Notes: generated by a model not told the origin, from the letters alone. A stretch of 64,000 bases of DNA from Rebecca billardiae RCC1528 (GCA_965240325.2 OZ251244.1:620001-684000); one strand, 5' to 3'. Shown: positions 3,039 to 54,512, counted from the first letter of the stretch. Numbers and translations: made by a program.

Positions 3039-4799
3039 TCAAAATCCGTCCATCGGAGTCACGCACGGCCGCTTGGACGCGCGCTCGTCCGCAAAATCGA
3101 CGGCCAGCGCCTCCATCAACTCCAACGCCTCCGCGGGGTCGTCGCGCTTGAAAGCGGCCCAGCGCTCCTGCTGCACGACCGCCTTGATCTGCTCCTTCGC
3201 CAGCGCGCGCACGCCCTCCACCAGCCGAGCGCACGGTCCGCCCGCCGCCTTGGCGTGCCGCAGCATGTCGAGGCAGTTGTCCACGTCCAGAGCAGCCAGC
3301 AGCGCGTCCTCGCACCGACGCGCCACGCCCGCCAGCACGTTGGCCTCAGATGCGGCAGGCACATCAGCCGAGCTCGCAGCTGCTGGCGGCGTTGGCGGCT
3401 GCAGCTTGTTCGTCAGCCGCAGCAGCTCGAGCAGCAACGACGGCTCGGCCGGCAGCGGCGCCTCGCCCACCGAGTGCAGCTGGCGCAGCAGCGCCTCGTG
3501 AGCCGCCGAGGAGAAGGCGGGGTCGGCCCGGACCTCGCGCTGGCCGCCCTCCGCCAGCCCGCCGCCCAGCTGCGCCTCGTAGTACTCGGAGTGCCGCGCG
3601 AGCAGCAGCCGGCTCGCACCCAGCTCGGTGCCGTCCGCGCACTGCAGCACCACGTCGTGCTGCCGCGTGGGCTCGCCCACCGCATCGGCCAGTGAGCACA
3701 GCTTGGCATCCAGCCGCGAATGCGCACTGCGCAGCTCGGCCTCGCTGTCAGCGAGCTCTGCGTGCGACGTGCGTGCTGAGGCGAGCACACGGCGGCGCAC
3801 GTCGTCGTTGGCGTGGAGCAGCAGGGTTTCGAGCACATCTTGCGCGGGGAAGCGTGCGAAGCGTGCTGACTTCTTATTCTCGGGAGCGGGCGGAATGCGC
3901 ATCAGCGCGTCGACAAGGCCAGGCGTGCGCGCAACGGCTGCTCGATGATAATCGCTATGGAGGATGGTCTGCAGCACTGCACCAGCGTAGTACAACGTGC
4001 CGGGCCGCGTCTCCTGGCCAGAGCTCTCCCACGTGGCCAGCAAAAGCTGCACCACACGCTCGCAGAAGCCCGCAACCAGCAAGGCCTTGGGGCGAGTGTG
4101 ACGAATCTCGACAGCGACCGTGTGAATGGCCAGTGCTGCCCCATGCTGCACGCGCGCGTTGGCAGACCCCAGCAGCGGCACGAGCAGTGGGATGGCTTCG
4201 TGCAGGGCGCGGCCGTTCCGCAGAGGCTCCATGGCGGCGAAGAGGCCGATGGCGTGCGCTGCATCGCATTGCGCCATCTCGTCTGCAGAGCGCAGCAGCG
4301 GGATGAGCGGCGCCATGGTGACGCCCGCCGCAGCGATCTCCTCCACCTGCAGGTGGGCTCCGGCGGCCCAGCTGAGCTGATATGCTGCCCGGGCTCGCAC
4401 GCAATCCTCGGCCGAGCCCAGCAGCGATACCAGCGCCCGGATGAGGCCAGAGTCGTAGAGCGCATCGGACACATAACCAATCGGGTCCCGCTTGTGCAGA
4501 AAGAAGATGGCCGTCATGGCAGCCAGCTGCACCTCGGCGGTGTGCTCAGGCGCGAGGAGCTGAAGCAGCGCGGGCAAAGCCTGCGATTGGCCAAACGCCT
4601 CCACGACCACACCTCCATCGTCCTCATCGATGCAGAACGGGACGAGTGCCGCGATCCTCGCCTCGTTGTCCGGAGGCTGAGCGCGCAGCGCGGTGAGGAG
4701 GGTCTCCAGCGCCTCGGGCTTGAGCTCGGCGTGACGAACAAGCTTCGACGCGCGCGAGTGGGCCTCTGTGAGCAGGGTCACCGCCGCGCTGGGATGCAT
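3039..4799 (-). CDS. Armadillo-repeat + C-terminal BTB/POZ domain protein (ARIA/ABAP1-like architecture)
   Basis: Long ORF with repeated LxxLVxLLxS...AAxAL ARM units. BTB motif DVVLQCADGTELGASRLLLARHSEYY followed by BACK-like CEDALLAALDVDNCLDML. Start is at 4799 or the in-frame ATG at 4901. Confidence 0.85.
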   Translation of the reverse strand: MHPSAAVTLLTEAHSRASKLVRHAELKPEALETLLTALRAQPPDNEARIAALVPFCIDEDDGGVVVEAFGQSQALPALLQLLAPEHTAEVQLAAMTAIFFLHKRDPIGYVSDALYDSGLIRALVSLLGSAEDCVRARAAYQLSWAAGAHLQVEEIAAAGVTMAPLIPLLRSADEMAQCDAAHAIGLFAAMEPLRNGRALHEAIPLLVPLLGSANARVQHGAALAIHTVAVEIRHTRPKALLVAGFCERVVQLLLATWESSGQETRPGTLYYAGAVLQTILHSDYHRAAVARTPGLVDALMRIPPAPENKKSARFARFPAQDVLETLLLHANDDVRRRVLASARTSHAELADSEAELRSAHSRLDAKLCSLADAVGEPTRQHDVVLQCADGTELGASRLLLARHSEYYEAQLGGGLAEGGQREVRADPAFSSAAHEALLRQLHSVGEAPLPAEPSLLLELLRLTNKLQPPTPPAAASSADVPAASEANVLAGVARRCEDALLAALDVDNCLDMLRHAKAAGGPCARLVEGVRALAKEQIKAVVQQERWAAFKRDDPAEALELMEALAVDFADERASKRPCVTPMDGF

Positions 4800-14224: not shown

Positions 14225-14475
14225 TACTGTGTCCTTCTGTGGGCCCTGATGCTTCTGGGTGTGAGCAGGTTGCACCAACCCGCTCTTCAGCGTCTCGCGC
14301 ACCGAGGTGGTAGCATCCCCCTGCACCGGAAGTCCGGGGCGCCAGCCCCCGGATCCACAAGGGGGGGTCCGGGCGCTCGGGCCGCGCCGGCCCGACCCGG
14401 ACGCGACTCGGCGAGGGACGAATCTTTTTGGCCGGCATCGCAGACGGCGCGCGCTCCGTGACGGGTCACGAGAGC

Positions 14476-16468
14476 ATGGCGGAGGCTGAGCCACCGTCGC
14501 CGACGCGCGTGGAGCAGGGCGCGGACGGTGACCTGGACGTGAGCGAGCCGGACACGTCGCTCGCTGACGCGCGCACCGAGCAGCTGCGCGAGCGGCTCGA
14601 GCTCGCGCGCGCGCTTTTTCGGAGGCGACGGCTGCGCGCGCAGCTCCCGCTCGGCACGCTCGGCGTAACGCTCATCCTGTCTGTACTCCTGGTGGTGGCG
14701 TTGCGCTTAGAAGACTCGTCGCGCGCTCTCGACCATGTGCCACTCTCTCCCATCGTCATGCTCGGGTGGAGCGCTTTGCTGCTCGCGCTGCTGCCGACGG
14801 ATGCAATGGCGATCAACTTCGTCTCGGCTTGCAGTGGCTGCCTGGGGCTCGGGTACTTGGCCGTCCTTGTGATGCGTGTGCTGGGCATTCTAGCCGCGCT
14901 CGACGCGGCCGAGGGCGAGATGGCGTTGCCACGCGTGCGAGCTGCCGCGTACCTCGACGCCGTGCTGTTCTCGGCGCGCGTGCTCTTCCTGCTCGTAGCG
15001 GCTGTGCGTGGCCTCTGGGTGCCCGTGGCGGCCGCCCGCGGTTACAGCAGCCGTTGGCGCCTCGAGTGGATGTGGCGCTCGGTCGGTCAATTGCTCGCCG
15101 CCCGCTGCGTGCTCGACATTGTGGGGCATGCTGGACACCTCGCGATCAGCCAGCACATACACCCCATCGACGTGACCATGCGGATCGTGAGCCTGACCGG
15201 GTATGCCGTACTCGCGTTCGCGTTCCGCGCCGGCGTGCGCCGAAGCGTGCAGGCGTGGCTGCAGTCGCGCGGCGAGTTGGCCGAGTCCGCGGCAACGGTC
15301 GCTGCGCTCCTCGGGCACAGCTCGCCCGCAGACGCGCTCGCCCGAGCGCGCAAGCTCTTCTGCTGCACGGCGCCGGCCGCGCTCACCGCCGAGCTGCTCT
15401 CCGGGCACAGCGCAGAGCTGCTCGCACAGCACGGCGAGCGCTCGGACGCGGAGAGCCCAGCGCCGCATGGGAGGCACAGGAGCCGTGCGGCAGTGTCGCC
15501 CGTGCTCTCGGCGAGCGCGCTGCGCGCGCTCGAGTCGCACATGAACGCCACCGTCCCGTGCCGACTCGGCGAGTGCGATGCGTTCATCAGTCACAGGTGC
15601 GGCGCTGCCACCGCCACGCCGCCATCGCGCGCCTCACCGCGCCTCGCCGATCGCATCGCTCTTCCTCGGGCGTGCCCATCCCCCTCCCCCCCTTCGCGCG
15701 CGGCGAGCAGCTGGTGGGACAGCGCTCCTGCGCGCTTCCGCGCCTTGCAGACGTGGTCCGCCTCCTTCACTGCCGCGCACGGACGACCGCCTCGCATCTG
15801 GATTGACGCGCTGTGCATTGACCAGCGCTCGCCCGACATCGCACTGCCGTGCCTGCCCATCTTTGTGGCGAGCTGCAACCGCTTCGTGGCGCTTGTGGGG
15901 CGGCGATGGCCCTCGCGACTGTGGTGCCTGGTCGAGGTGCGCCCCTGTGCGCTTTCGCCGCCGCGGCCGCTCGCGATCTTGCCACGGCACTTGCACGTTG
16001 TGCCACGCGCACCGCTGGTGGGAGCGACGCGCGCGCCCGCCTGCCCGCCGCCCCGGCTCACGCTGCCCGCCCGCCGCGCTCATGCTGCCCGCACAGCTGA
16101 GTGTGTTCATCGCGATGGGCGGCGACCGACGCGACATCGACCTCGTCTTTCTCGACAGCGAGTGGGACGAACGCCACCTCAACGCCGAGGCACCTGCCGC
16201 TCTCGCCGCTCTGCAGGTCGTGCACGTGGCGAGTGCAGAGTGCGGCGCAGAGGGTGACCGCGCGCGGCTCATCTCGACGGTCGAGGCCGGCTTTGGCACG
16301 CTCGACGCTTTCGACGAGCAGATGCGCGCGCTGCTCATGGAGGCCGCGCGCGCCCGACAGGATGTCGCTGGCATCCTCAGAATTCCAGGGATGGGCTTTG
16401 CCGATGGCAGCATCCGCAGCAACGTACCCCCAAACCGTGCCGACCACTGTCCTGCGATGCCTCTATGA
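14476..16468 (+). CDS. Multi-pass membrane protein with C-terminal TIR/HET-like domain (3 exons)
   Basis: About 6 hydrophobic segments. Removing introns 15597-15710 and 15937-16096 gives DAFISHSWWD...RIWIDALCIDQ...LPCLPIFVASC...SRLWCLVELSVF. Confidence 0.8.
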
Positions 16469-16494: not shown

Positions 16495-16610
16495 AGAGAG
16501 AAAGAGAGAGAGAGAGAGAGCTCAGAGAGCAGAGAGAGAGAGATTGAGCACGAGAGAGTGACGAGGCACGAGCAGAGAAAGAGACTAGAGAGAGAGAGAG
16601 AGAGTGAGAG
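16495..16610. repeat. Imperfect (AG)n microsatellite
   Basis: Long agagag tract. Confidence 0.95.
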
Positions 16611-16650
16611 CCGCTACACGGTCCTCGTCTCAACAATTGATTACCCTATA

Positions 16651-18460
16651 TTATGGCCCGCGGTGCAGGGCGGAGCGCGCAGCGTGGAGCCCGCACCAGC
16701 GGGCCCGAACCACGTTTCAAAAAGATCTTTGATCAAGAAAAAGGGACGCGGGGGCCGATTTTTAGGGCTGGCGGAGACCGAGTTTCGAATTTTGAGACCC
16801 TCTCTACAGATGCATCACGGAGAAAAAAACCGCGCCCACGACATTCCCCTAATCAATCGTGGACGGCCGGGCGTGAGAGTTCACTTCTGTGTGAAGTAGG
16901 ACGGTTACAAGTCCAATACAAGCGTCAGCTTCTTTGAGGCTATTTTTGCACGTCCTTACGGGATCAGCGAAGTAACCAACCGCTATATATTGGCTTCGTC
17001 GGGGTCGTATTCACTAAATACTGGAGAACATTTGCACCGCGCTTCGTATTCATATGTATGGTTCACGCAGGCATAAAATCGCTTCGTCGGGGTCGTATCC
17101 ACTATACTGGAGAACATCATTTGCACCGCTTCGTTTTCATACATTGTAATGTATATGGTTCGTGGACTGCTACGGGGTCGAGCAGAATATCATCGATATT
17201 CATCAGGCGCACGTGTGCGTATTCATCATCAGCCTTCGGGAATTGGGGGTAGCTATTGGCCTTTTGCCCTCTGGCGAGCCAGTTGTGCGCACTTTGAGCA
17301 GGCCTTGAGCAGGCTCGAGGCCACTCTTTTGCGCTCACGTGGACATGATGCCGAGCACGTCAGCTGGCGACGCCGACGAGGACCGCGCTCGCCGCGTATT
17401 GAACGTGCTGCTCGAATCCGGGGCAGTGAAGAAGGTGGCTAAGAGCACGCTCCAGAGCATCGCTGCTGCCATCTCAGTCGTGAGGCACAAGCAGGACGTG
17501 CCCTCTGCGGCGGTGAAGTACAACGTGCCCAAATGGTCGATCTACAACTTCGTTCGCAAGGTCCGCACCGTGCTGGAGGACGAAGGCGCAATCGGCAGGG
17601 GGAGCGCGACGCGACTGATCACCGACTTCACCACGCGCCCCGCAGGCCAGCTCCCTCCCTCCTCCTCACCCGGCCCAACAGCTGGCAGCCGCTTTGCGGC
17701 ACTCGCCGCGCTCGACGGGGAAATGCCCGCTGCAGAGAAAGCTGACAGCCGCAGCGGGGGCGCCCGGCCGGCTCGCTCAGCCTGCTGGGCACGCTCAACC
17801 TAGGCGTCACGTGCTACCTCGGCTCGCTGCTGGCGGCGCTGCTCGCGTGCCCTTCCATCGTCTCGCTCGCCACATCTGCCGCGGCTGAGCAGTCCACCAA
17901 CCCCATCGTGTCCCGAGCATGCGCTCGCTGGCGCTCGCGCATGTCAACTGCGAGTGGCCCAGCGAGGTGGGGCCGACGCGTAGCTTGCTCGAGCCGCTCC
18001 ACGACGCGATCGCGGAGGTCTGTCGGTGGACAACGGCGTTTGGGCAGCAGCAGCAGGACGCGTGCGAGGTGCTGTACAAAATCATGGAGGCCCTGGCTGG
18101 CTGCGACGAGGCGTGCTCATACCTTGGCTTGCTCGAGTGCCTCGGTCAGCTGGCGAGCGAGCAGCCCTCGCAGCAGCAGCGCGTGCCGACGCCGACGATC
18201 TCGCAGCAGCAGCGCGTGCCGACGATCTCAGTCGGCCATGACTTCGACTGTACACAATCGGCGCCTCGCCGGCGGCTGCGATGGGCCCGCCCGGCCGCGC
18301 GGCGGGCGGCGGCGCGCCGCTGGAGTCTACTCGCTGCCGGGCTCGCGGCCGGGCGGGCCCACTCTCGATCGCGACGGAGGGTGCGACGGAGGGTGCACCG
18401 CCACCGCGGGCCCCGAACTACGTTCGTTCTACGGAAAAGGACCGCGGAACGCGGTCATAT
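16651..18460 (+). mobile_element. Helentron/Helitron2-like non-autonomous element, copy A
   Basis: 5' TTAT + sub-terminal IR GGCCCGCGGTG (16655-16665). 3' partner CACCGCGGGCC (18402-18412) followed 27 nt later by hairpin GACCGCG-GAA-CGCGGTC (18440-18456). Internal tandem repeat at about 16993-17130. The same ends occur at 52104-54512. Confidence 0.75.
17345..18120 (+). pseudogene. Frameshifted psq-like HTH + USP (peptidase C19) deubiquitinase fragment inside the Helentron-like element
   Basis: Frame 2: SAAVKYNVPKWSIYNFV (HTH). Frame 1 at 17788-17853: GTLNLGVTCYLGSLLAALLACP (USP Cys box). Frame 3 at about 18040-18095: FGQQQQDACEVLYKIMEAL (QQDAxE box). Confidence 0.7.
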
Positions 18461-19285
18461 ACTATACGGCTATATATATATATATATCATGGAGAGCACA
18501 CCTGCACATCACACTGTCAGACTGGGCACCAGTCCTCGAAGACACCGTTCCACAGGCCAGTCGCGGGTAAGTTTCCGCATCTACCCGCACGCCACCGGCG
18601 GAGGCACGATCTCACTACTATCTCGGCAGCCCCAAGCCCCGAGCCGGGTACTCCGGCCTCCGGGGCTGACCCATCATCCGTCATGTGAGCCCGTCCGCCT
18701 CGCCCCTTTGGGGCGGTCCTAGCCCCGCCTGGTCGCTTCCGGTGGACCTATCGCCCACACGCGCGGTAGGGAGCACCCACGCTTCTTCTTCAGTCTAACA
18801 CACTCACCTCCTGGCCGCCTAGGCTTGCAAGTGACGGGCACCCGTGCGGCCCCAGCACTCTCCATTCGGTCGAGCTGCACCCACTCACCACGTCCACTGA
18901 CCCTGGCACCCATCATGGCTTCAGCCGGGTGGGTGACAATTGGAGGACTCCTCTGGGCAGCACGTGAAGCCGGCCAGCTCGGACGTGACCGTGGCCGACA
19001 GGGCGGTGACAATTGACGAACTTCATCTGGTGCCACTGCGGTGTTTTGCTGCCGACCAGCTCAAGACCAAGTTCCACGCGGCTGAAGTTCCATACCCATT
19101 CTATGATTTATACCGGCTCAAGTTCCACGACACGATTTTGACGATGACCACGGATTGACGACGGGGCAAATCTGCTTTGTCCGTTTCCCCTCATTGATTT
19201 CTTTGGTCCGTTGTCGGACGAGAAGTTGACTTGCTCTTCACCGACCACGCCGGACGTGATGTGCCATTATTGCTCACCAGCAGCG

Positions 19286-20422
19286 ATGGCGGCCGCCGCC
19301 ACACGATGCGCGTGCTGGATCATGGTGCTGCGGTTATTACCCGTCGACGCATGGCGTGGGGATAGACACAACCTCTCTCAGCTTGACGAGTACATACTCT
19401 CGTTTGACCATGGTAACGCGATCGAGGAGGTGGCGCTCGCGTACATCGTCACGGGCGTGGCTGCGCGCCGCGCGCCGTTCCCCCTTGCGGCCTGGACGGC
19501 GCGCGTGCATGGTGGCTGGGCCGGGCTGATCTACGTGGTGACGGACACGCCTGAGTGCGCACCGAATGGCACGGTGGTGATCAGCACCCTCGGCGTGCCT
19601 CCAAGCATGGCGAACCGCACGGGCGAGAGGCGCATCTTCGAGGTGCTGTACAAGCGGCACAAGATGCTTCTGCTCTCGCTGCTGCCACCCACCACGCCGT
19701 TCGTGCTCTACCTCGACAGCGACGTGCTGATCGCCGCCCCGCTGGCGCCGGCGCTCGCCATGCGCCACTGGATGATGCGCCCAGCGCCCCCGGGCGCGAG
19801 CGCGCCGGAATCCGACGCGCCAACGCTCGTGATGTTCCACGTGGGCAGAGGCGCAGAGCCGTGGCACGGCGCGATCGTGCTCATGCGCCGCGGCGTCTCC
19901 GAGACCTGCCTCGCCGCGTGGCACGACCAGCTCTGGGATGAGCTGAACGACAAGAGGAGCATAAAGATCGAGCAGGTGCGCGACCAAAGGGCCCTCTCGA
20001 GGCTCGTCGGCCAGACGCACAAGAGGAGCGCCAGGGCGGACAACTCGACCTGCCGGCTCGAGGCGTTCAAAAGCCGCTGGCTCGAGTTCCCCAGCGGCAA
20101 ACGGGTCGCATCGGGCCATCCGTGGCCGATCTTCGTGCACGTAACGACGGGACGGATGAAGAAAGGACTCTATGGCATGACCGCGGCGATGCTGCAGCTA
20201 CTGGGAGAGCAGACTGGCGCCAATCGGCTGATCTCCTGGGCGCTTGGCAGCAATCTGCGCGATTCATCGTCTCACAACACATCAGCCGCATCGCCATCGG
20301 ATCAGCGCGGAAGCAGGGTCCGCAGCACGTCGAGCGCGGCCATTCCACAGTCACACACAGTGACGGGCACGCTGTGGACTCAGCAGCGCAACTGGCACTG
20401 CCCAAGCAATGCGACTGAGTGA
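19286..20422 (+). CDS. GT-A fold (DxD) glycosyltransferase-like protein, paralog 3 of 3
   Basis: Same motifs as paralogs 1 and 2; 19427-19757 is nearly identical to 12121-12451. Confidence 0.75.
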   Translation: MAAAATRCACWIMVLRLLPVDAWRGDRHNLSQLDEYILSFDHGNAIEEVALAYIVTGVAARRAPFPLAAWTARVHGGWAGLIYVVTDTPECAPNGTVVISTLGVPPSMANRTGERRIFEVLYKRHKMLLLSLLPPTTPFVLYLDSDVLIAAPLAPALAMRHWMMRPAPPGASAPESDAPTLVMFHVGRGAEPWHGAIVLMRRGVSETCLAAWHDQLWDELNDKRSIKIEQVRDQRALSRLVGQTHKRSARADNSTCRLEAFKSRWLEFPSGKRVASGHPWPIFVHVTTGRMKKGLYGMTAAMLQLLGEQTGANRLISWALGSNLRDSSSHNTSAASPSDQRGSRVRSTSSAAIPQSHTVTGTLWTQQRNWHCPSNATE

Positions 20423-52103: not shown

Positions 52104-54512
52104 AATAATGACCGCGTTCCGCGGTCCTTCCGTAGAACCAACGCAGTTAGAGGCCCGCGGTGCACCCTCCGTCGGCCGTCGGCTGTCACTGTCAGTCTGA
52201 CATGTGTAACAGTTCGCCTGAGGACTGTCGCCGCGCGGGCCGCGCGCGGGGAAGCGGCCGCTGGGGCGGCGCGCGCGCGCAGGGCGAGAGGCGCCGCGCG
52301 GCGCGGGCCGGCGCGTGCGCGCGTGCGGGCGCACCTGCTTGAGGTGCTCGCGCTGCGCCATGCGCTCGACGACGGGCCGCTGGTCGCTCAGCCGGCGCGC
52401 CTCGTGCCGGCAGAGCGAGAGCGCGCGCCACTCGGCTGCCCCGGCCTGCCGCTGCGCAGCCGCGCACCGAGACCGAGCGAGCGGAGCTCGGGGTGGAACG
52501 AGGCGAGCGGCGCGTCGCGCCTGCCGCGGCGCGTGCGCGCCTGCTCCACCGCGCCGCCGTGCTCGCCCGCCGCCTCCTCCGCCGCGTCGGCGGCCTCGAA
52601 GACGGCGGCGGCCAGCCAACGGCAGGCTCGGAGCCTGTGCGCGCTCCTGAACCGGCGCCGATCGCCTCGACGGCCGTCTACTCCGCACAGCTGGCTGCTC
52701 GAGCTGCTGCACGGGGCGTCGCGACGAGGGCGCCGCGCGCGCCCAGCGCGTCCGTCGCCGCGTCGCGCAGCGCGTCGCGCTCGGCGTCGCGCTTCGCCAG
52801 CTCGGCGCACAGCGCCTCCGCGCGCACGTGCTGGCATGCACGGCCTGTCTGTCAGTGTCTGTGTGCCTGTGACGCCGCCCATCTGCGCGCGCAGCTCGGC
52901 TGCAGCTCGGCTGCAGCTCGACGGCGGACTCGTCGCGGCTGGCGGCGAGGGTGCGCAACGCGTCGACGGCCGAGGCCTGCAGCCCGGTGATCGCCGCGTC
53001 GACGCGCGCGGCGCATTCCCAGCGCAGCTCCTCGCGCTACGTGGCCGCCGCTTGCGTGCAGCAGTGTCTTGCGAGCGTTCGGGACTGGCTGGCTGCTCGT
53101 CCTCACGCTGCTGCACCTCAGCGCCGCCGTCGACCGAGTTGAGGAGGAGCTCGCGCTCGGCGTCGAGGAGCGAGCTCGCGTGCTCGAGCTCGCCCTTCAG
53201 CTGCGCGAACTCCGGGCGCATCCGGCTCATCTCCGCTGCGTGCTCGGCGCGCTCACTCATCCTCGAAGCGTCCGAGCGACAAGCTCGTGAGCGTGCTCCG
53301 GACTCGGCTCGCCCTTGCGCGCTCCTCCTCGAGCGACGAACACGCCCGCGGGCAGGCTGTTGCCCGCCGCCTCCGCCGCGATCTCGCCGCCCCCGCCGCC
53401 GCGATCTCGTCGCGCATGCTTTGCAGCGGGGCGCTGTGGGCGCGCCGTCGGCACGGCCTGGCGACGGACCGGACCGAGCGAGACGCGCGCGACGCCTCGG
53501 GGAGAGCCGGAGCGGAGCGCGAGGGCGAGAGCAGAGCGCGAGGGGGAGACCAGCGGCCGGCCGGCTCCCGCCACCGCGCGCGCACCGCGGCGTACGCGGC
53601 GCCGACACGCACGTCCCCGGTCAGGGCGCCGCAGCGACGAAGCGAACGCGAACGAGCGAGCGAGCAGCTCGAGAGTCGAGGGCCGTCCGTGCTCGGTCGA
53701 ATAAGTGAGCGTAGGGCGCGCGCCTGGCGGCTCCCAGTATCCAACTTATTGCGAATAGGTAGCAAAACTTGATCACTTCCAAGTGCCCGTGTATGGCCTA
53801 TGTTTCCAGCACCAAGTGATGCATCGGTAAATAACAGCGCGCCGCGCGCGCACGCAGTACGCCGACATGCAGTAGTTGAGGAGGACCCTGACCATGCACA
53901 TCAACATGCACTTTCAAAAGGTTGCGCTTAGGCCCGGTTTGTAGGCGGGTAACTTGTTACGTTTTAACAAGCCGCCATAGGCGCCATTCAAAGAATCTCG
54001 TTTAACATTAGTGCACAGGCGGTTCATCCATCGAGGCAGGCGGGTAATGTGGTTGAACAAGCGCTATTCAAAAGAATCTCTTTTAATATTATAGGGCGGT
54101 TCATCCATCGAGACAGGCGGGTAGGTGTTTAAACAAAGCGCTATTCAGAAGCATCTGGCCTCATAGCTGTTTTCGACCCAAAACAATCAAACGTCGCTCG
54201 GCAAACTCGTACTCCAGCATACAAGAATGACAAAAATACTCACTTGTTTCACCCCCGGGGTATCTGATCCCACGTCCGTCCATCGACTTATGCGGAATGG
54301 CGTGGGCGCGCTTATTTCGTCAAGCGCGTAGTTGCTAATGCAGAGCACTATGGGCCAACGTACCCCTCGAAAAAGCGAAAACTCACCCTCCAACACCCCT
54401 CAAAATCGTCCCCCGTCCCCTTTTCTTTGATCAAAAGATCTTTTTGACAACGTAGTGAGGGCCCCCGGCGGGGCTCCACGCTAAGCGCTCCGCCCTACAC
54501 CGCGGGCCATAA
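52104..54512 (-). mobile_element. Helentron/Helitron2-like non-autonomous element, copy B
   Basis: Same roughly 110-bp 5' end (54400-54512) and 3' sub-terminal IR + hairpin (52152-52164; 52110-52126) as 16651-18460. Internal tandem repeats at about 53940-54155. Confidence 0.75.
52330..53290 (-). pseudogene. Frameshifted coiled-coil gene fragment carried inside Helentron-like copy B
   Basis: Coding-like stretches in shifting frames (SRMSERAEHAAEMSRMRPEFAQLKGELEHASSLLDAERE; AAVFEAADAAEEAAGEH; VVERMAQREHLKQ followed by a GTGCGC donor). Confidence 0.45.

Follow-up and report, generated by a model that had tools for sequence, protein, structure and literature searches.

A probable Helitron2-like element of Rebecca billardiae with a broken cargo frame for a helical domain joined to a USP fragment

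Transposons are known to take up pieces of genes, as in the capture of gene fragments by maize-type Helitrons, and to carry proteases, such as OTU in Helentrons and Ulp1 in MULEs. For elements of the HLE2 group, the HELIANO survey of 2024 reports the Pfam family UCH (PF00443) in autonomous members, lists it among the domains that are nearly exclusive to the group and enriched in its subgroups c and d, which come mostly from lungfish and newt genomes, and describes it as encoded apart from RepHel (PMC11417382). Insertion of HLE2 is stated to occur between T and T (PMC11417382), and Replitrons are characterized by short direct terminal repeats (PMC10288648). The presence of a USP-type domain in Helitron-like elements has thus already been described; an earlier note on the DNA investigated here, which was not aware of a helix-turn-helix (HTH) and USP combination as standard cargo, is corrected in this respect by the recurrence of UCH as an extra domain of HLE2 (PMC11417382). 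The element described in this study shares with these systems a Pfam family tied to HLE2-type elements. In contrast to the UCH of the autonomous members in the survey, its domain is cut to the first 40% and fused to an N-terminal helical module, and it resides in 1.8-kb algal elements devoid of RepHel. These are the features that are particular to the present case, and a limited literature search returned no paper on a truncated UCH fused to a helical module in short algal elements of this kind.

The window, a stretch of 64,000 nucleotides from R. billardiae RCC1528 (GCA_965240325.2 OZ251244.1:620001-684000), contains at 16654-18457 what is most probably a young, non-autonomous copy of a Helitron2/HLE2-like element, whose cargo ORF for a helical domain and a USP fragment is dead in this copy. 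This 1.8-kb repeat encloses the region 17345-18120, for which the earlier note had proposed a mobile element, and it occurs in at least 40 copies in the 72-Mb genome of 41 contigs. A search of the genome with 17330-18240 led to 40 scored matches among 121 first-look candidates, with at least 16 of the scored matches showing 97-100% identity and a second group about 90%; a diverged copy is located at C23:1566168-1567028. The limits of the element were obtained by BLAST comparison of the window with 10 other loci of 20 kb, which placed them at 16650-18461, and were narrowed by alignment of the termini to a 5' end reading TGGCCCGCGGTGC at 16654 and a 3' end reading GACCGCGGAACGCGGTCA at 18457. 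Among all element ends present in the compared loci, each of the 24 5' ends is preceded by A (13 of them by the pair TA) and each of the 27 3' ends is followed by T (19 of them by the pair TA), and no target-site duplication was found in the flanks of these ends. The window copy itself is flanked by A at 16653 and T at 18458, within TA-rich sequence. The proposed mobility is thus borne out by the copy number, the defined ends, the A and T flanks and the lack of a duplication. The features of the element are compiled in Table 1.

Table 1. Features of the element, with positions counted from the first letter of the window
Feature	Position	Strand	Basis
Complete ~1.8-kb non-autonomous element, probably Helitron2-like, subfamily A	16654..18457	+	BLAST against 10 loci, terminus alignments
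Left terminal sequence, starts TGGCCCGCGGTGC	16654..16850	+	Genome search, ssDNA fold
Variable internal region, two ~70-nt direct repeats	16985..17141	+	Self-matches, element positions 336-405 versus 424-492
Start codon and predicted N-terminal helical domain, ~80 aa, plausibly a tri-helical HTH	17345..17581	+	AlphaFold2
Low-complexity Pro/Ser/Ala linker, holds first frameshift	17582..17781	+	20-copy alignment
N-terminal USP/C19 (Pfam UCH) fragment	17782..18100	+	Pfam UCH positions 2-104 of 254, PDB profile matches
Cys box	17788-17844	+	Cys codon 17812-17814
QQD box	18045-18074	+	Within USP fragment
Gln-rich low-complexity continuation of the frame, without domain match	18101..18281	+	Translation, domain search
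Right terminal sequence	18282..18457	+	Fold, genome search

Both termini are structured. The first ~50 nt of the element form a long hairpin in a fold of the single-stranded DNA (-23.5 kcal/mol, z -3.5). In the right terminal sequence, positions 18282-18361 constitute a palindrome with 30-nt arms, and a terminal hairpin with a stem of 7 bp and a GAA loop (GACCGCG-GAA-CGCGGTC) occupies 18440-18456, after which only the A at 18457 remains. The two ends are related by an inverted repeat, with TGGCC-CGCGGT on the 5' side facing TGACC(GCGTTC)CGCGGT as reverse complement of the 3' side. The repeat is short and asymmetric, its 3' copy containing a loop of 6 additional nucleotides. A genome search with the first 150 nt returned 1080 first-look candidates, the 40 scored ones being 99-100% identical, and a search with the last 162 nt returned 1071. 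With about 1070-1080 candidates each, the termini thus serve a far larger population of elements than the carriers of the USP piece, which was found at about 35 loci of the genome. The left terminal sequence is common to many other element families, and the internal region at 16985-17141 differs among subfamilies.

The described properties are those of non-autonomous Helitron2/HLE2 elements, with respect to multiple copies, insertion without target duplication at a dinucleotide in a specific orientation, short and asymmetric inverted termini, a 3' stem-loop, short copies without transposase and swappable cargo (PMC11417382). The target differs from the T and T of HLE2 in being A and T, usually between TA and TA. 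This difference from the published target (PMC11417382) and the short asymmetric inverted repeat speak against the assignment. Two other classes were considered and rejected: the canonical Helitrons (HLE1), which carry 5' TC and 3' CTRR, whereas the ends found here are TGGCCC... and ...GGTCA and thus of a TGG...CA type, and the Replitrons, as the termini are inverted and not direct. The element would thus be of rolling-circle type, with its 5' TGGCCC within a hairpin and its 3' end marked by the GAA-loop hairpin and the subsequent A, and would enter TA-rich sequences at an A|T junction without duplicating the target. As the 1.8-kb element contains no transposase gene, its movement must depend on a transposase supplied in trans, presumably from a giant RepHel element elsewhere in the genome. 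RepHel ORFs were located at C23:65118, C33:783174, C39:342498, C7:282420 and C13:616682, and five Helitron_like_N loci are found in the genome, three of which contain PIF1 in the same frame of 2606-3640 aa. A linkage to RepHel, which had been suggested as a check, was not found for this non-autonomous element of 1.8 kb.

The sole gene of the element would be its cargo ORF, in which, as read from intact sister copies, a helical domain of about 80 aa, possibly of HTH type, is connected by a Pro/Ser linker to the N-terminal ~105 residues of a USP domain. In the window copy, the three recognizable pieces of this ORF, the N-terminal part labelled as psq, the Cys box and the QQD box of the USP, occupy three different frames within 17345-18120. 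The frame at 17339, with its ATG at 17345, translates as ...AAVKYNVPKWSIYNFVRKVR... and in a fuller read as MMPSTSAGDADEDRARRVLNVLLESGAVKKVAKSTLQSIAAAISVVRHKQDVPSAAVKYNVPKWSIYNFVRKVR, which is followed by the Pro/Ser linker and a stop at 17803. The frame at 17782 reads LLGTLNLGVTCYLGSLLAALL, also given as LLGTLNLGVTCYLGSLLAALLACPSIV, and the frame at 17919 reads ...FGQQQQDACEVLYKIMEAL, also given as ...AIAEVCRWTTAFGQQQQDACEVLYKIMEAL, with the QQD box at 18045-18074. The Cys box GTLNLGVTCYLGS at 17788-17826 contains the catalytic cysteine (codon 17812-17814) and aligns with the Cys box of USP30. All three motifs named in the earlier note, including the intact cysteine, are thus present in their three frames, and the two frameshifts that it held responsible for hiding the gene from the ORF track correspond to two 2-nt insertions, which were mapped in an alignment of 20 copies against intact frames. 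The first, TG at 17743-17744, occurs in the window copy alone; the second, CG at 17914-17915, is found in 16 of the 16 copies of subfamily A that were examined and is absent in subfamily B. Introns in place of frameshifts are ruled out, since the subfamily-B copies and one copy of subfamily A (L005) read through and the differences are insertions of 2 nt. In L005 the frame is restored by a compensating 2-nt deletion 83 nt downstream. The window copy is a pseudogene with a broken frame, its ORF being dead through one subfamily-wide and one private insertion. We have left its three pieces unjoined and have instead based the analysis of the protein on sister copies that are naturally intact.

Such copies, which the earlier note had proposed to search for, exist in both subfamilies, with a single open frame of 411-529 aa spanning all three motifs in L005 of subfamily A and in L017, L018 and L019 of subfamily B. 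About 10 copies of the older subfamily retain an open frame, an observation that counts against the preferred reading of a dead cargo. The sister copies match Pfam UCH with 27.7, 25.1 and 24.2 bits, which is above the cut-off of 23.9 bits, whereas the Cys-box piece of the window copy (E 2.6e-4, 21.1 bits) stays below it. In the sister copies the match is confined to positions 2-104 of the 254 positions of the profile. The same segment matches PDB profiles of USP30 and USP14 (E 4e-5) and also of USP1. It shares with USP30 and USP14 (MEROPS C19) a Cys box of the form G-x-x-N-x-G-x-T-C-Y and a QQDA-x-E box in canonical spacing, whereas fingers, palm and the His and Asp boxes are missing and the similarity is weak (25-28 bits). 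The element reads GVTCYLGS where USPs have GNTCYMNS, with the Asn residues on either side of the Cys box substituted.

The truncation of the USP is a property of the family. Past ...EALAGCDEACS the frame turns into a Gln-rich sequence of low complexity and subsequently enters the palindrome at 18282-18361 and the terminal hairpin. The intact frame reads through the right terminus without encountering a stop before the flank, and the last ~75 'residues' are thus a translation of the right terminal sequence. No His box, palm or fingers are present in the window copy or in the intact sisters. A six-frame scan of the genome with UCH, which detected the N-terminal segment in the element copies, revealed no C-terminal half beside any of them, whereas the host USP genes showed both halves of UCH in the same scan, and the remaining frames of the element yielded no domain. 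Since the part with the catalytic His and Asp is absent, canonical deubiquitinase activity is excluded for the ORF product, whose sequence covers no more than the initial ~105 residues of the USP domain. Of the USP-family deubiquitinase proposed in the earlier note there thus remains a segment derived from USP/C19 with its Cys box, covering positions 2-104 of 254 and lacking the His box, for which relatives had been suggested as a source and which was found neither in the intact sisters nor beside any copy.

The function that the earlier note had assigned to this protein was that of a DNA-targeted active USP, which would strip ubiquitin from chromatin and thereby counter the silencing of the element. 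The retention of the cysteine in its box and of the QQD box, the confident prediction of a helical domain at the N-terminus with a potential for DNA binding and the recurrence of OTU, Ulp1 and UCH proteases in Helitron-like elements would all be in line with such a role. It is nevertheless largely refuted and in our view barely credible, as the match ends at position 104 of the profile in every copy and at position 102 in an environmental relative described below, a His box is missing in any frame of the element and beside any copy, all that follows the fragment is about 350 nt of structured terminal DNA, AlphaFold2 assigns a confidence below 50 to the USP part, and the most successful subfamily has spread with its frame already broken. 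An anti-silencing activity on histones thus has no basis in a USP part that is devoid of His box, palm and fingers.

Predictions are more favourable for the N-terminal domain. In an AlphaFold2 model obtained from a five-sequence alignment, residues 11-82 are modelled with pLDDT values of 77-87, as opposed to values below 50 for the USP part, and form helices at 8-24, 33-48, 52-59 and 63-79; the model from a single sequence is poor. The last three helices, together with a motif AA-x-x-Y-x-V-P/S-x-x-x-I, are compatible with a tri-helical HTH and provide the likeness to HTH_psq, CENP-B-N and transposase HTH domains, none of which reaches significance. HTH_psq (PF05225) matches the N-terminus of subfamily A with E 0.14 and 12.4 bits, below the cut-off of 20.4 bits, and matches neither the N-terminus of subfamily B nor the environmental relative. 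Structure-based searches with the AlphaFold2 model returned nothing significant in Foldseek, where the best rows were sigma region 4, KorA and TFIIB at E ~1. In a VIA fold search, cyclin repeats of TFIIB (Z 7.1) and TrpR-like proteins (Z 5.7) were in the noise range for helical bundles. In the ESM Atlas all rows were at chance level (at or below 0.82), including HTH_psq, HTH_23/28 and CENP-B_N at 0.76-0.78. An HTH-type fold of the N-terminal domain is thus plausible from the model. The psq-like HTH of the earlier note is sustained as a confidently predicted helical domain, plausibly an HTH, and fails in its assignment to HTH_psq; in the combined profile search that it had suggested, UCH exceeds the cut-off in the sisters (at 21.1 bits in the window copy) and HTH_psq stays below it.

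Both parts of the ORF are distributed more widely in the genome than the 1.8-kb family. The N-terminal module yields 93 matches, which fall into at least eight multi-copy groups with 43-100% amino acid identity, many of which keep open frames of 184-437 aa. Beyond the loci with the USP piece, shorter pieces containing only the Cys box (residues 1-48, 12-58 and 1-58 of the USP piece) occur at about 21 further loci in other multi-copy families with 69-76% identity, and the extent of the USP fragment varies among multi-copy families (residues 1-48, 12-58 and 1-117). The best match to the USP piece outside of elements shows 29% identity (E 0.09) and thus indicates no recent host donor. A donor gene in the host was also rejected on the basis of genome searches with the USP piece, the environmental relative and the N-terminal piece, which all returned element copies only. 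The recent acquisition of one or more 5' exons from an HTH-USP gene of the host, as in classic Helitron captures, would agree with the known uptake of host fragments by Helitron-like elements and with the presence of only a fragment of the domain. It is very improbable in light of the described lack of a similar locus outside of elements, the restriction of matches of the environmental relative to element copies, the multi-copy nature of all matches to the N-terminal module and the age of the layout, which is common to another organism at 26% identity. The element thus resembles the maize-type captures, the OTU-bearing Helentrons and the Ulp1-bearing MULEs in being a transposon with part of a host-type protease gene, whereas it differs from the maize-type captures in that its donor is undetectable in the genome and the layout of the fragment is old and diversified among subfamilies.

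The fragment might instead be the front part of an accessory HTH-USP gene of an autonomous HLE2 that was lost or has not been sampled, with the 1.8-kb elements being derivatives of an internal deletion in which both termini and the initial part of the gene were retained. This scenario would account for a frame that enters the right terminal sequence directly and without a stop of its own, and it would fit the recurrence of UCH as a separate ORF of autonomous HLE2 elements (PMC11417382). It also draws on copies of a long form, located at C12:1938312-1940531, C16:986325-988542, C7:298387-300598 and C12:1466425-1468644, which part from the window copy after 18112, exactly at the end of the USP homology, and contain about 1.1 kb more before reaching the same 3' end. 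We consider it possible but rather doubtful, as the C-terminal half of UCH is detected neither in the long forms nor near any RepHel, the N-terminal module finds no match at the RepHel loci and the environmental relative appears to end at the same point. The six-frame scan revealed no UCH at the RepHel loci of this genome, and a UCH-bearing autonomous Helitron was rejected as no Helitron_like_N or PIF1 locus was located near a UCH match.

The history of subfamily A is informative in respect to the role of its ORF. The copies of the subfamily have a mean pairwise identity of 98.7% and share the CG insertion in all 16 examined cases, which implies that they were amplified after the ORF had been broken. 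Since the subfamily spread with a broken frame, the ORF was dispensable for its spread, both in cis and in trans, which has nevertheless led to 16 or more copies that are 97-100% identical. The divergence from subfamily B is unevenly distributed, with 0.267 differences per site between the two consensus sequences in the N-terminal module (codons 6-100) and 0.009-0.027 over the linker and everything downstream of it. Another family with an open frame of 193 aa and at least 10 copies, one of them at C17:961076-962400, matches the window exclusively over 17330-17705, at 98-99% identity. Subfamily A thus looks like a recombinant, in which a 5' part of the type found with the 193-aa ORF was joined within the shared linker to a 3' part of the B type. 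Its putative mosaic structure, with a 27% difference in DNA from the sister subfamily in the N-terminal module and 1-2% from the linker on, is by analogy of the cargo-swapping kind seen in Helitron-like elements, and would provide a clean case of mosaic cargo exchange between subfamilies.

For relatives beyond this genome, 1.84 billion representative proteins were searched exhaustively by HMMER and yielded a single match (P0001, E 1.8e-8), a protein of 286 aa from JGI metagenomes that is found on four contigs of no more than 1753 bp each and that has a variant of 290 aa in Logan (P0002). It is collinear with the ORF of the element in its N-terminal module, linker, Cys box GLWNVGNTCFLN and QQQ box, with 26% identity and a pairwise E of 1e-16. 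It matches Pfam UCH with 37.6 bits, above the cut-off, at profile positions 1-102 only, and searched against the genome of the window it finds copies of the element and nothing else. The size of the contigs is near the length of the element, and we would guess that the protein derives from a similar short repeat. Scans of metagenomes with the five-sequence alignment returned no relatives, those with P0001 only generic matches to the Cys box, and a scan of viral contigs was equally negative. The layout of the protein hints at a conserved element-borne product, and the co-occurrence of both modules argues for past selection on the ORF at the level of the protein and against a mere junk cargo. 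It is the one observation that favours conservation of the two-module layout at this level, and its persistence at 26% identity stands against the preferred reading.

These relatives bear on a view in which the intact ORF encodes a functional small protein with a helical DNA-binding domain and a dead USP 'thumb' that serves the element, for example by attaching to the terminal hairpins and attracting the RepHel transposase, or through contact with a partner of the ubiquitin pathway. Selection would in that case act on the master copies of the family, and the window copy would be one of its dead members. We regard this as unlikely. The collinearity of P0001 and P0002 over both modules would support it, as would the occurrence of the N-terminal module in at least eight diverged subfamilies with many open frames. 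Across the 27% divergence between the consensus sequences of A and B, no stop is seen in the N-terminal module of either lineage, whereas 67% of neutral simulations acquired one, and YN00 provides an omega of 0.31. NG86 and LWL85, however, return values of 0.79-0.81 for the same comparison, and the amino acid identity of 54 in 95 residues is close to the neutral expectation of 48.5 +/- 3.2 (p ~0.06), so that the evidence for constraint on the N-terminal module from these sequences is weak at best. Further points against a functional protein are the amplification of subfamily A while broken, the scattering of USP pieces of varied extent over families, the origin of the final ~75 residues by translation of a DNA palindrome and the possibility that P0001 ends at the edge of one of its short contigs. 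Substitutions private to single copies are synonymous in 38% of cases in the ORF compared to 43% in the tail and thus show no coding signature, which is expected after insertion and uninformative with respect to master copies.

If the intact ORF were functional, short rolling-circle elements would encode a DNA-binding accessory protein that is in part a protease remnant, which would be unusual. A more far-reaching version, in which the helical module and the USP thumb constitute a conserved, element-borne and DNA-tethered 'pseudo-USP' that aids short Helitron-like elements in at least two marine protists, appears to us distinctly improbable. Such a protein might recruit the transposase to the terminal hairpins or bind a factor of the ubiquitin pathway or of chromatin, and elements classified as non-autonomous would then carry an accessory factor of their own instead of being passive deletion derivatives.

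For annotation, the young HLE2-like copy favoured here defines a high-copy Helitron-like family in a GC-rich alga, in which the apparent deubiquitinase is truncated and, at this locus, broken, and its recognition guards against naming about 35-55 loci as USP genes. In other copies, the sequence corresponding to ~17145-17169 is a site of nested insertions, as found in the split copies L024_L034 and L026_L036.

Private indels were counted in an alignment of the ORF region of 20 copies of the USP-bearing element (loci L001-L020). Those confined to a single copy display a strong insertion bias, with 36 insertions as opposed to about 5 deletions. Half are exact tandem duplications of the adjoining 1-15 nt, and several others are imperfect copies of adjacent sequence. 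The insertion bias and the duplicated neighbouring sequence together suggest a duplication- or template-driven mutation process operating in the genome (G000).

Two of the ten examined copies are interrupted, by inserts of 2.6 kb and 8.4 kb, one of which opens with the 5' end of another element in reverse orientation. Both breakpoints map to almost the same AT-rich position inside the element (...GTAATGTATATGG...), so nested insertions apparently favour this AT patch of the element as a target. At a further locus, L014, two elements are arranged head-to-head, and no more than 3 nt separate their opposed TGGCCC 5' ends (CCA-TAA/TTA-TGG).

Within the window, the USP-bearing element is preceded by a (GA)n microsatellite and followed by a (TA)n run, and its neighbours are a multi-TM TIR/HET-like ORF on one side and a 403-aa ORF on the other. 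A second element of about 2.4 kb has ends of the same kind (5' TGGCCCGCGGTG at 54509, 3' ...CGCGGAACGCGGTCA at 52109). Its interior differs from that of the USP-bearing family, and parts of it match other loci with 85-93% identity.

A further multi-copy family, whose open frames span 281-359 aa, is found at no fewer than 12 loci of G000. It carries just a Cys-box piece of about 47 aa, with 74-76% identity to the USP fragment of the element, and shows no match to the N-terminal module. Finally, two partial UCH matches with equal scores (63 bits, profile 7-141) are found 12 kb apart on contig C10, with no RepHel or PIF1 hits near either; one falls within a 2081-aa open frame, and the pair may constitute a duplicated host gene.

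Coordinates of the described features in the window, at copy loci and in G000
Feature	Location	Position
(GA)n microsatellite	window	16495-16610
(TA)n run	window	18471-18487
TIR/HET-like ORF	window	14428-16257
403-aa ORF	window	19211-20422
Second element	window, minus strand	52109-54509
Split copy	L024_L034	7115/9710 (window ~17145-17169)
Split copy	L026_L036	1072/9459 (window ~17145-17169)
Head-to-head pair	L014	~3198-3202
Cys-box family	C1	1508640, 4393502
Cys-box family	C3	2633587, 25227
Cys-box family	C5	2229240
Cys-box family	C8	469062, 673369
Cys-box family	C10	2447488
Cys-box family	C12	862176, 2322329
Cys-box family	C16	1412136
Cys-box family	C39	519014
Partial UCH matches	C10	395038-395592, 407179-407733
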